Below, piece after piece: positions 17,455 through 29,246 of a stretch of DNA of 50,426 nucleotides (positions are counted from its first letter, which is position 1; every line of letters starts with the position of its first letter). A program made the position numbers and the translations under genes. The stretch is taken from the NCBI RefSeq assembly GCF_964194025.1, contig NW_027450919.1, positions 1 through 50,426 of the forward strand, read 5' to 3'. Under the pieces are notes generated by a model that did not search any database, was not told where the DNA came from, and worked only from the letters and a program-made list of their open reading frames with translations. Origin of the DNA: Convolutriloba macropyga. Lineage: Eukaryota.

Positions 17455-17672
17455 GGATGTGGGGCAAAACAGGTGGGTTTGTGTACCGCTCCCACCACTT
17501 TTGCCCCCCTTTCGTTCGAATGAATCGTACTTCATATACATATTGTATGTAAACAAATACAACAGTGTAACTTCATATACTGTAAACAAGTACAACAACG
17601 TTCCCTGTCCATTTTCGAATTTTTGAAGGAGTGGCAGTCGCAGGCCGCAGTCTCGGCCCACGACTAAGTCGA
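17455..17672 (+). repeat. Left terminal inverted repeat (218 bp)
   Basis: Reverse complement of 29029-29246. No mismatch found by eye; pairing breaks at 17454/29247 and 17673/29028. Confidence 0.95.
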
Positions 17673-17844
17673 CGCGAAGCCATCATGCGGCAAGTCGTGA
17701 GAAGCAATCCACTTCAGTCGGCATAGGCAGTGCATCCCCTTCGAAAAACTTCGATTTCATCGGAACCTATGTATTGAGCGTTGCCGCGGTTATCAAGCTT
17801 TCGGCAGCTCGGCTGTTAGTACCGGACTTAAAGAAGTACCTAAC

Positions 17845-20800
17845 ATGGTAACGGCGAGAGTTAGAGCTGGCAACACTGCCTTATCGCGACATTTGCGCAA
17901 GCAAAGACGTGCCGGCCAGAAGCGGCGGAGTCAATCGACCCATTATTCGGATGGCGAGTCTGAGGATGGAAGTATAGATCGTGATTCGCCTGTCTTTGTG
18001 CCTTGCGGCGATAGTGAGCCGGACGAACCCGCTGCGTGCGATCATTGCACCTCCTTCGGGCCGGGCTCCGCAGTAGCGGTAGCATTGCCCATATCGGAGA
18101 GGCTGCAGCCCGCAGAGCGGAAATTGGTTTACGTCTCTCCGGATAAACACGAGGGCCATTTTCTCGTGGCAGCCCATAAGACGACACGGTATCATACGAG
18201 CCCACGCGAATTCGTTTTCGTGGGGTTCAGATTCGTACAGTGCCGAGGGGAAACGGTGTTGGTGGGGTGGTGTAGCGCTGATAGAGACTGTTCGGAGAGA
18301 TCATATCGAAGGGAGATGTTCCCTGAGATGGACTTTCCACACATGGATCCGGCAGAGATAGCGGAAGAAAGCCGGCTATGCCCGTGTGCTGCGAGGCTGC
18401 TGAGGAGCATGGGGGGTCCAGAAAGCTTGGAAGTCAAGCTTGTGATGGATGCGGTGGAAGCTCGGGAGCAATGGGAGGACAGTGAAGCGCTGATCGGACA
18501 TTGGGAGCTGCAACGCAAGCAATACTGCTGCATCAACCCGAGAGATCAAGCTGGCAGCGTGTTTGGCCAGTGGGGAGTGGTGAGGCAGGTCAAAGACGGT
18601 TTCCTCTGCACTATGTGTCAAGGAACCCCTAGGCACTGCATGCACACCCAGGTGCTCATGAACGCGGACAGCGGTCTACGAACTCCTATAGCTATGCCCC
18701 CAGAGGAGATGGATAGAAGGATCAAACGTGCATTGGACCCGTGCACTGGAAGGTTCCGTGTTGGCACTGTCTCTAAGTTCCCTCTCCCATTCTTCCCAGA
18801 GGATGACCCCGAAGTCCTACGAAAGCTCAAGGGTAGGTGGCTAGCACACCGAATGCACAGCGCCTGACATGGAGAGCACGGCATTTTTGTCAAACCACGG
18901 CTGAAAGGTGTTCTGCTATGTTGCATAGAGTTTGCAGAAGGACAGCGCCTACCTCCAAGACTCGCGCCTTCTCATTGGCCAGGATGTGAGACAGACGGTT
19001 GCTGTCGTTGTACCAACCCCTTGGAGAGAACGCAAGAGATGACGGTGTACTCAACATGTGGCAAGCAGGTGATTTCATACACCACACTTGTGTGCAGTGA
19101 GTGTGGCCATGAGATGGGAGTGGATGGTCTGCAACATGGGATCCTCATCCTCAGACGTGACGTAAGTGCAACATGCTGCCCTGTATTATGCCTGCATATA
19201 CCTGTAGTATGTCTGCTCATACCTGTCCTACATGCCGTTTATGTCCGGTTCTAGTACTTGTAGTATGTTTTAGCGTACTTATCTGACCTGCAGTGTGCTT
19301 CTGAACATCATACTTGTATTATGATAAAGCATACCTATCCTGACTGAAGCATATGTTTGTCTGTCATACTTGTAGTATGCTCTGCATTCTTATCTTACAC
19401 CCTGTAGCACCTGTCTATTTATCATACTTGTAGTATGTTTTGGATGCTTGTTCTCGCTGCTGTATTTGGGGTCTCGAATACTTCACAGCATACGTTTCGT
19501 CCGAGTGTGCAACATGTGTATGGAATTGATATTTCTAGTATGTCGACCTCCGATTAATGCAGATTGCCTTCTCCCATGAGCTTCTTTATCGATGGCAGTT
19601 CCATTTTGCCGTAAATGATGGCGGCTATTACTCGTATTGGAGAGGGGTGTTGGCCGGGTAAGTGGGCTTCCACTGATGTCGTGCTTACATCCCGAGTTAT
19701 GCTTGCCATTTGAGCAAGCGATTGTTACTTTGCATTGTATATATTCTCCTTAGAAATTGGCAATTGTGCAGTTACACTTGGCCAACGGGCACCACCCATT
19801 TGGAGCTGCGAAGGGAATTCGAGCGTACAAGAAAGTCCTTCACAGATGCAGTTAAAGCCTTCATCAGACTGCAAAGCCTACCGTACGGCGAGATCTTCCG
19901 TTGCAATTGCCAGGTAGGTACTAATCTAAGTGGTTACGGCATGACTCGTAGCAGAGGTGCTCAAACACGGTGAAGTATGCACAGACATATTTGGAATCTA
20001 ATCGATCGGGGTGCTCTGTATTATTAGACTTGAGATATGCATAGGCGTACTTACGTAAACTATCAATTACTGTACTTGTGATACCCCTGTACATACGAAT
20101 TCCACAGGGAGGGGTTCCCCAAAAAGTTCAAGCAGACGGAGTCTCACTCTCCATCAGAAAGTCGGCATGCTCGCTACAGCGCCCCTACTTGCCAAGCAAG
20201 TCGGATATCCTTTGTACTTCCACAGGTATGTATTGGCATATTACCTGCTTGTTGAAGACCCATTGTGTTTTGGGGGTTGACGGTTCATGGTTTGAGGTAT
20301 GCGAACGGTCGCAGGCTCAGCCTTCACAGACAGAGTCTTCATCGCCAACAAGACCTTGAGGAAGGAATTGATAGGGTGTTTTGAAGCGCACACAAGCTCT
20401 GGCGGCAGGGTGCGGGCAGGCGTCGTCCCAGACGCCGACACAATGAGCAGCTTGAAGCGATCGCTACTCTTGGATGAAAACGGGTGTGAGTCCCTGTGGC
20501 CCATCGTGCAGACAGCGTTTGGAGATGCCCCACCCGGCTCTGTGGTCCGGCACGTCTACATGGAGATCATACGGACACTGGCGACGAACGCTCCGGTTTG
20601 TCACCTCGTAAAGCCACATCTCTTCGAGATTGTTGACAACTTGATACATGGGGGGGAGCCATCCTTCCCCGATCTCGACAAGATTCACGTGCACAGCCCC
20701 GCTCTGCTGCGATTCATCAAAGGTGCTGGAGGTGCCGGCCATGGCCTGGATATTAACGTCCGACACCTTCTACGCGCCATGAGATACCGAGCTGAGGCTG

Positions 20801-28947: not shown

Positions 28948-29028
28948 TGTGTTGGCGATGGGCACGGCAAGTCTGTAGTAGCTGTCTCTCGTGCGCACCT
29001 GTTGCAATGCTTTTCGTATTCATGGCCC

Positions 29029-29246
29029 TCGACTTAGTCGTGGGCCGAGACTGCGGCCTGCGACTGCCACTCCTTCAAAAATTCGAAAATGGACAGGGAA
29101 CGTTGTTGTACTTGTTTACAGTATATGAAGTTACACTGTTGTATTTGTTTACATACAATATGTATATGAAGTACGATTCATTCGAACGAAAGGGGGGCAA
29201 AAGTGGTGGGAGCGGTACACAAACCCACCTGTTTTGCCCCACATCC
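29029..29246 (-). repeat. Right terminal inverted repeat (218 bp)
   Basis: Reverse complement of 17455-17672. Confidence 0.95.

Follow-up and report, generated by a model that had tools for sequence, protein, structure and literature searches.

KDZ elements are, to our knowledge, among the least understood DNA transposons, and we know of no established account of how they transpose, by what rule their ends are recognized or which proteins help them. The Cryptococcus elements KDZ1-3 measure 9-11 kb, are bounded by long terminal inverted repeats (TIRs) and carry extra open reading frames (ORFs) of unknown function (PMC11343200). The canonical Zisupton architecture combines CxC4, KDZ and SWIM (PMC11343200), and fungal Kyakuja elements generate 7-bp duplications (PMC12730594). 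The Chlamydomonas element Tcr1 is classed as Kyakuja, and an insertion of Kyakuja-3_cRei has been observed; accessory genes of the Chlamydomonas Kyakuja and Zisupton families are not described in the same papers (PMC9940879, PMC8226300, PMC10828217). Here we analyze a stretch of 50,426 nucleotides (the window), corresponding to positions 1 to 50,426 of contig NW_027450919.1 in the Convolutriloba macropyga assembly GCF_964194025.1. A model's sequence-only reading of this DNA had picked out a KDZ-type transposon with three genes, namely a transposase and two further genes designated cargo A and cargo B below.

The element extends from position 17448 to position 29253 and spans 11,806 bp. Its transposase is, on sequence criteria, a divergent but intact member of the KDZ group. 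Comparison of the predicted proteins shows that both cargo genes have been passed on together with the transposase in diverged families of the same alga, of which there are at least three and probably four, and that they are constrained at the protein level. We consider it moderately probable that the locus is an autonomous cut-and-paste KDZ transposon of the CxC4 type, in which cargo A and cargo B fulfil the helper roles proposed below. Its main features are given here with strand and supporting evidence; L001 and L010 are copies at other sites, L002, L003 and L004 are sister elements and X1-X4 are four public runs.

17441-17447, no strand: heptamer AGGCATG of the left flank, probably one half of a 7-bp target-site duplication
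17448-17454, + strand: left terminal tip CATTTAC (start of the L010 match; junction in X4; L004)
17455-17672, + strand: left TIR, 218 nt, beginning with the conserved motif GGATGTGGG
17845-22093, + strand: KDZ transposase gene, 9 exons, 953 aa (GT-AG exon chain and homologue alignments)
17845-18832, 18938-19161, 19563-19657, 19772-19913 and 20108-20225, + strand: transposase exons 1-5
20297-20829, 21133-21382, 21476-21617 and 21724-22093, + strand: transposase exons 6-9
24622-25641, + strand: cargo A gene, about 305 aa (L002, L003 and L004 have homologues at this position)
26529-28947, - strand: cargo B gene, four predicted exons, about 520 aa (ORFs and family comparison)
29029-29246, - strand: right TIR, 218 nt, identical to the left TIR
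29247-29253, + strand: right terminal tip AACCCAC (L001; loose ends in X1-X4; L004 and L002)

The three sister elements were found through ORF fragments related to transposase exon 9. They lie on three contigs of one ENA assembly, ERZ25071359, which is also the source of L001. The transposases are 40-75% identical at the protein level, and blastn comparison of the window with these elements detects similarity in the transposase exons only. The sister elements are composed as follows (E values are from tblastn).

L002: transposase, cargo A on the same strand (E 2e-20), cargo B on the opposite strand (E 1e-39)
L003: transposase and cargo A (E 4e-10); the contig stops before the position of cargo B
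L004: transposase, cargo A on the same strand (E 3e-17), cargo B on the opposite strand (E 3e-39)

Gene order and orientation in L002 and L004 are those of the window element, and L002, an element of about 11.7 kb, has imperfect TIRs of about 80 nt at its own ends. Between families the cargo proteins are 28-50% identical and the DNA is unalignable. For every family pair, the proportion of nonsynonymous differences in the cargo genes (pN, 0.38-0.50) is lower than that of synonymous differences (pS), which is saturated at 0.63-0.77; for transposase exon 9, pN between families is 0.16-0.19. Searches of 5.8 billion proteins through a word index with cargo A, cargo B and a cargo B profile of three sequences returned copies from these elements only, and no cargo paralogue was found elsewhere in the window. 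Together, the conservation of the genes, the lower pN and the outcome of the protein searches rule out spurious ORFs and, as far as sequence comparison can tell, make it very unlikely that the genes were captured recently from the host. Thus the expectations that went with the sequence-only reading, namely that the cargo genes would not be private to one copy and would show signs of selection, were borne out: both genes recur in L002 and L004 and cargo A recurs in L003, with pN below pS in every pair and no host-like relative in the proteins searched.

The nine transposase exons join into an ORF of 2862 nt that encodes 953 aa without an internal stop, in agreement with the uninterrupted D-D-E protein of about 950 aa and nine exons that had been read from the letters. 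All introns are of the GT-AG type, and tblastn alignments, whether to homologues or to sister elements, break at the exon borders. Two stops that appear to be in frame, after 18864 and 21438, fall within short introns, and at the latter position the homologues have a gap of about 31 residues. The least certain junction is the acceptor of intron 5 (GAG/GT at 20296).

Assignment to the KDZ group was based on homologues scoring above the Pfam cut-offs, on a weak CxC4 match and on the aligned D-D-E residues, with Pfam being run exon by exon. An exhaustive phmmer search with exon 9 retrieved 435 relatives. Among 20 long relatives, CxC4 was present in 13, several of them above cut-off, and PF18758, the KDZ catalytic domain, was present in 10. 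Exon 9 aligns with residues 535-621 of one relative, P0025 (phmmer E 1e-10), inside the PF18758 match of that protein (residues 486-622, 40.3 bits for a cut-off of 26.6). The fused exons 8-9 of L004, which are 73% identical to those of the window, gave a PF18758 score of 23.1 bits (E 6.8e-5), under the cut-off. In the window transposase itself, CxC4 (PF18717) was matched weakly, at 21.8 and 23.4 bits for a cut-off of 26.9, with single-exon queries; the higher score (E 5.9e-5) was obtained with exon 2, where the CxC4-like cysteine cluster is located. A Pfam scan of the separate exon pieces found no PF18758 match, as the sequence of this domain is distributed among exons 5-9. The D-D-E residues occupy invariant columns of the family alignment, the first D in exon 5 (VQADGVSL), the second D in exon 8 (YDNGC) and the E in exon 9 (CEQKN). 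Thus the catalytic domain was recognized indirectly, through homologues that pass the PF18758 and CxC4 cut-offs, and this profile check upheld the KDZ assignment with the window's own CxC4 score remaining under its cut-off.

Pfam searches of the transposase pieces, the cargo pieces and the homologues detected neither a SWIM domain nor a Ulp1-type protease (peptidase C48). TET/JBP dioxygenases likewise gave no hits in the pieces searched, so that cargo candidates of either the TET/JBP or the Ulp1 type were rejected, as the sequence-only reading had anticipated. Since SWIM and the Ulp1-type protease were not found and the target-site duplication is probably 7 bp long, the element is not filed as Zisupton sensu stricto. 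The probable 7-bp duplication is the one feature that agrees with Kyakuja. More distant KDZ relatives are present in Logan contigs (L006-L008) and in GCA_025491035.1 (JAOQID010008621.1; L009), and their intron-free transposase ORFs measure 750 and 829 aa. In L009, other, unassigned ORFs lie on both sides, of 360 aa upstream and 167 aa downstream, which resemble neither cargo A nor cargo B.

The TIR arms, at 17455-17672 and 29029-29246, are 218 nt long each and 100% complementary, exactly as first read. A 33-nt terminal probe matched the window at the two arm ends only, for a chance expectation of 0, and the G+C content is about 50% inside the element and 57-65% in the surrounding DNA. The arms had been taken for the limits of the element (17455-29246); in this respect the earlier boundaries had to be moved outward by 7 nt on each side (to 17448 and 29253), because copies and loose ends at other sites begin or stop there. 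The alignment of L010 begins exactly at 17448, and a left-type junction in run X4 reads GTAAATG, the same 7 nt as the left tip. On the right, L001, which lies at another site and has a different flank, shares AACCCAC (29247-29253) beyond the arm, and in contigs from the four public runs the match stops at 29253 and is followed by several different sequences. The tips CATTTAC and AACCCAC are conserved and are not complementary to each other. The sister element L004 has a perfect TIR of 72 nt that also opens with GGATGTGGG, and outside it lie the hexamers also found around the window TIRs, CATTTA to the left and ACCCAC to the right; the right end of L002 reads GGATCCAACCCAC and includes ACCCAC. 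Inward of GGATGTGGG, the TIR sequence varies from family to family. In the window, the left TIR contains an inner inverted pair of GGGGCAAAA (17461-17469 and 17499-17507), and each TIR holds two direct copies of the bipartite motif ACTTCATATAC...TGTAAACAARTACAACA, starting at 17529 and 17570 in the left arm.

The sequences that flank the window copy are unlike, AGGCATG at 17441-17447 and TCGATAT at 29254-29260. However, the left heptamer also comes directly after AACCCAC, the right tip, both in L001 and in loose ends from X1 and X4, an agreement at fixed offset that has a chance of about 6e-5. Pairing the left flank of the window with the right flank of L001 therefore points to AGGCATG as a probable 7-bp duplication made upon insertion.

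L001 is 99.88% identical to the window element and L010 is 99.67% identical. The identity of the arms and the 99.6-99.9% identity of copies at other sites support the view that the element is young and, judging from these sequences, was recently active. In the phrase "young, probably active" of the sequence-only reading, youth thus stands; activity is something we infer, as neither transcripts nor new insertions were observed. Relative to the flank, word depth in runs X2 and X3 is about twofold for the cargo B region and about 14-fold for the TIR, values that are not copy numbers. The excess at the TIR (29000-29399; about 14x against about 2x for cargo B) may reflect deleted, non-autonomous derivatives that retain the ends. 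In run X4, the interval 27629-28160 of the window is represented by a second cargo B variant, which differs at many bases within the 95% limit and has a depth about 3-4 times that of the flank. This suggests that the sample contains one more copy, slightly diverged.

Both cargo genes, which had been announced as intact and spliced, are present and conserved in the sister elements, with splicing deduced from the sequences. Cargo A consists of exon 1 (24622-25176) and exon 2 (25279-25641), separated by an intron of 102 nt (25177-25278) that is in frame and has a GT donor, a CTAAC branch site and an AG acceptor; in L002 the two parts lie in different frames. The four predicted exons of cargo B, on the - strand, comprise 28947-28095, 27949-27815, 27725-27513 and a last exon that runs to the stop at 26529, with an acceptor that is not fixed (between about 27019 and 26830). 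The basic runs noted as resembling nuclear localization signals were recovered in both translations, KKKKKEQQEEDKRKKKKQK in cargo A and RKRKHR in cargo B.

The cargo B protein begins with an acidic stretch and the basic run. Next come a 250-aa region that all three families conserve, a helical segment, a variable part bearing repeats and, in the last exon, a conserved C-terminal motif, WQVAFMK.FLY. Exon 1 holds the basic run, the MADS-like module and the helical domain. Modeled with AF2, the 250-aa region reaches an overall pLDDT of 68. Residues 23-79 are modeled as helix-strand-strand-helix, resembling a MADS module (pLDDT about 60), and residues 110-240 as a helical domain (pLDDT 80-90). A wide search of 48,161 PDB chains with VIA, without Foldseek, placed the EIN3 core DNA-binding domain (4zds_B) first against the helical domain (about residues 112-245), with a Z of 7.8 and an rmsd of 3.4 over 108 of 129 residues; the next chain had a Z of 5.8. 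With Foldseek, the top 11 entries from Swiss-Prot AFDB were EIL1-5, NRF1, Ewg and P3A2 (E from 5e-3), the AFDB clusters were led by NRF1, EIN3-like and YDR124W-like families, and the PDB search listed the NRF1-DNA complex (8k4l) first, followed by SRF, MCM1 and MEF2. When these Foldseek PDB hits were re-aligned with VIA, Z did not exceed 5 (4.6 for NRF1). The ESM Atlas gave low scores that serve as leads only: 0.68 for SRF-TF and 0.64 for Nrf1, with 0.42 for the helical part alone. A cargo B profile found no match among PDB sequences. In NRF1, a MADS-like dimerization domain precedes the helical domain that binds DNA (PMC10810270). Cargo B may thus be described, from its model, as EIN3/NRF1-like in predicted fold. 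It is not filed as a member of either family, because each score is marginal and no sequence profile matches.

The N-terminal half of cargo A is disordered and basic/acidic in character, and contains runs of K, E, S and A as well as a long basic stretch. It is followed, still in exon 1, by the conserved motif GDWELEFP.VY.RL.AGQ. The C-terminal module of about 120 aa, encoded by exon 2, has eight Cys/His residues that are invariant across four families and are arranged as H-x27-CxxC-x(n)-CxC-x(n)-C-x12-Cx3H. Sequence and profile searches with cargo A against Pfam and PDB found no match, and the ESM Atlas returned DUF6570 at 0.72, a low score of value as a lead only. A cysteine-rich domain of the piggyBac type (PHD-like paired CxxC) was considered and rejected: the ligand pattern differs and there is no match in Pfam or PDB.

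We propose the following mechanism. The transposase would recognize GGATGTGGG, the motif common to the diverged families, and cut at the tips, and insertion would create the 7-bp duplication. Cargo B, made of the MADS-like module and the EIN3/NRF1-like helical domain, would act in the nucleus, probably as a dimer, and bind DNA in a sequence-specific manner. It would bind family-specific repeated motifs in the long TIRs, for which ACTTCATATAC...TGTAAACAARTACAACA and GGGGCAAAA are the candidates by prediction, and thereby pair the ends, recruit the transposase or control the promoters of the element. Cargo A may be a second, nucleic-acid- or protein-binding adaptor in the complex, acting through its zinc-type eight-ligand module; this is the least certain step. 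The family-specific sequence of the inner TIR fits what would be expected if the helper of each family recognized its own ends. The suggestion of TIR-binding helpers made in the sequence-only reading gains support through the EIN3/NRF1-like fold predicted for cargo B.

Several observations weigh against this interpretation. Binding of TIR motifs by cargo B is predicted from candidate sites only. The cargo B model was built from an alignment of three sequences; its fold matches lie under conventional significance (Foldseek E of 5e-3 or more, TM 0.2-0.3), and a Z of 7.8 is a level that a common helical arrangement can reach. None of the three cargo B members matched EIN3 (PF04873), Nrf1_DNA-bind (PF10491) or SRF-TF in Pfam at E values up to 10. 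The structure model of cargo A has a pLDDT of 51 and is unusable for a fold search, the models in general being based on three or four sequences. No RNA run holding the element was found, the four runs that do hold it looking like DNA, so that splicing and all gene models are deduced. At the ends, no target-site duplication surrounds the window copy, whether the perfect arms or the extended ends are considered, none was seen at L004 and L002, and the 7-bp duplication is a single cross-contig pairing. Lastly, no cargo homologue was detected near the distant KDZ loci L005, L006 and L009, whose transposases are 23-35% identical; hence the cargo pair is, as far as visible, specific to this algal lineage, and such helpers are not general to KDZ elements.

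The main rival to the helper role, although not exclusive with it, holds that the transposase alone transposes and that the cargo proteins regulate expression or chromatin, cargo B being a transcription factor for element or host genes or an anti-silencing factor and cargo A a chromatin adaptor. We give this view a lesser but appreciable chance. The two activities may coexist in one protein, as in the case of TnpA of En/Spm, which is both a transposition cofactor and a regulator. The nearest folds to cargo B (EIN3/EIL, NRF1 and MADS) all belong to transcription factors, the distant KDZ elements apparently manage without both genes, and fungal KDZ elements carry TET/JBP genes as anti-silencing cargo (PMC12730594). 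On the other hand, the strict co-inheritance of the cargo genes, in fixed order and orientation within DNA that is otherwise unalignable, fits an obligatory partner equally well, and each TIR contains repeated motifs of the type bound by known helper proteins. None of these points separates the two readings. A different possibility, that the cargo genes are captured host fragments (transduplication) carried as functionless passengers, is highly improbable. Host sequence capture is frequent among large DNA transposons, and the proteome of the alga is possibly missing from the databases searched, in which case a parent gene may be overlooked. Yet the two genes occupy the same position and strand in two sister families, and cargo A does so in a third; the proteins have stayed similar although introns and spacers diverged past detection, with pN below pS in all pairs; the searches of 5.8 billion proteins return copies from these elements only; and the window holds no cargo paralogue elsewhere.

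For the window copy taken by itself, the proposal of an autonomous element must also be set beside the possibility that its flanks derive from two different insertions, joined either by recombination between copies or by an assembly join through the 11.8-kb repeat. We put the probability of such a join a little short of even. It would account for the lack of a flanking duplication and for finding the left heptamer again next to the right tip in L001, X1 and X4. In addition, the contig that carries the left flank of the window in another public assembly stops short of the right end and folds back at 25728-25740. We infer that the right half of one insertion was replaced, in the window assembly, by the right half of another copy together with its flank. 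Against this, the element itself is complete and colinear with the sister families, the right flank of the window is found at single-copy depth in runs X2-X4, and L004 and L002 likewise are without obvious duplications, so the duplication rule of this lineage may be not yet understood. In any event, the coding capacity of the element is unaffected by mismatched flanks. The folded contig, ctg32120 of ENA ERZ25071359 (84.6 kb, containing L010 and L011), comprises the left flank, the leftmost 8.3 kb of the element and then an inverted second left half, which terminates at a different flank, GGGTAACCTAC, adjoining CATTTAC. Its L011 part, with the window's own left flank, is 99.6% identical to the window over 15.6 kb. 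The fold-back is either a real palindromic rearrangement of two copies or a fold-back assembly artefact. The mismatched flanks and the fold-back contig both illustrate how assemblies can be misled by a 12-kb element that is active and has long perfect repeats.

The remaining features of the element are the following repeats, none of which has a strand.

22591-23706: internal tandem repeat, 3 x 408 nt, 96% identical, in non-coding spacer
25671-26448: intergenic direct repeats, with two units of 141 nt at 25671-25968 and pairs of 60 nt and 110 nt at 26111-26448
27021-27342: tandem array of 23-nt repeats in the predicted third intron of cargo B

At 22591-23706 the alignment to other copies splits into overlapping pieces. 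The intergenic repeats contain the fold-back junction of ctg32120 (25728-25740) and the end of the L001 contig (25954). A coding role for the 23-nt array was rejected, because the array is intronic by prediction and has a period not divisible by 3. The equivalent cargo B region contains 153-nt in-frame repeats in L002 (13800-15646) and L004 (12800-14985), which remain open for 681 and 846 codons, respectively, and specify 51-aa units rich in P, A, S and Q. In the first cargo B intron, a poly-C/G tract (28006-28039) differs in length between the window and L001, and this difference alters the frame of the prokaryote-style ORF call P0001.

Elsewhere in the window, about 1 kb to the left of the element, an uninterrupted ORF of 509 aa on the - strand (about 14868-16397) has UDP-glucose/GDP-mannose dehydrogenase domains (PF03721 and PF00984, from the gene table of L011). 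Between 3350 and 9031, several repeat families occur three times each at a spacing of about 1.6-2.2 kb, with 73-98% identity, in what looks like a tandem triplication of about 2 kb. A G+C-rich minisatellite with 14-nt units, CTGTCCCCGACCGC and CTGTCCCCAGACGC, lies at 41034-41732 in a region of strong negative GC skew, and a run of 132 N occupies 2974-3105.

The element offers a compact, apparently intact KDZ model with defined tips, a common terminal motif and candidate binding repeats, in which the reality of two helper genes and the constraint acting on them can be argued by comparison alone. The fold predicted for cargo B turns an ORF of unknown role into a testable idea of end recognition. 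It is quite unlikely that cargo B is truly homologous to EIN3/EIL and NRF1/Ewg and is an obligatory partner in a green-algal KDZ lineage. Were this the case, the EIN3/EIL and NRF1/Ewg families, which are of obscure origin, would share ancestry with a transposon end-binding protein and may derive from one, just as WRKY-GCM1, BED, THAP and FHY3/FAR1 derive from other transposon superfamilies. Common descent behind the fold likeness would also bear on the origin of the DNA-binding domains of plant EIN3/EIL and animal NRF1. Cargo A, for its part, would define a new zinc-binding module.

As for mechanism, the nearest parallels to the proposed role of cargo B are TnpA, which acts with TnpD in En/Spm (CACTA), and the Myb-like ORF1 protein of PIF/Harbinger. 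In both, the element encodes a separate DNA-binding protein, which binds repeated motifs near the ends and cooperates with the catalytic transposase. The likeness is in the proposed mechanism only, these superfamilies and their DNA-binding folds being unrelated to the window element. With EIN3/EIL and NRF1/Ewg/P3A2 the likeness is in predicted structure: the EIN3 core domain is the best match of the cargo B fold, and NRF1 has the two-part layout of the cargo B model. These proteins are encoded by cellular, single-copy host genes, whereas cargo B is a transposon gene without a PF04873 or PF10491 match.

Among KDZ elements, Zisupton of fish and fungi shares with the window element the KDZ catalytic domain, and its CxC4-type N-terminal cluster (PMC11343200) has a weakly scoring counterpart here. 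It differs in having SWIM and, often, a Ulp1-type protease, neither of which was found here, and in a duplication of 8 bp, as opposed to probably 7. The Kyakuja and Zisupton elements of core Reinhardtinia, including Chlamydomonas Tcr1 and Kyakuja-3_cRei, resemble it as KDZ elements of GC-rich green algae with TIRs and, probably in the case of the window element, short target-site duplications, and are active in the laboratory (PMC9940879, PMC8226300, PMC10828217). Kyakuja-3_cRei, set beside the window element by description, is reported to have imperfect TIRs and an 8-bp duplication. The family described here may already be catalogued in the curated Chlamydomonas library of transposable elements. 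The KDZ elements of Basidiomycota with TET/JBP genes also have a conserved non-transposase gene that is thought to be helpful, and fungal Kyakuja make 7-bp duplications; however, their cargo is a 5-methylcytosine dioxygenase and fungal Kyakuja lack TIRs (PMC12730594). The window element has no dioxygenase and carries instead a DNA-binding-type protein and a Cys/His-module protein.

The closest counterpart in layout is KDZ1 of Cryptococcus neoformans (PMC11343200), which has a KDZ transposase with an N-terminal CxC, a length of 10,944 bp, TIRs of 236 bp (218 here) and three coding genes, two of them without recognizable domains, and whose mobility has been shown. It differs in being a fungal element of the Dileera clade, with CxC1 as opposed to the weakly matched CxC4 of the window element and a target-site duplication of 8 bp (probably 7 here). 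Conservation and fold have not been reported for its extra genes, and these are compared with cargo A and cargo B by description, with no claim of homology. The element had been put forward as the best candidate in the window for an undescribed system. For the general layout this proposal has to be given up, because Cryptococcus KDZ elements already have extra genes of unknown function (PMC11343200). Measured against the searchable literature, what appears to be new is a specific accessory pair that diverged families have retained along with the transposase, conserved tips that are asymmetric, the eight-ligand module of cargo A and the EIN3/NRF1-like prediction for cargo B.

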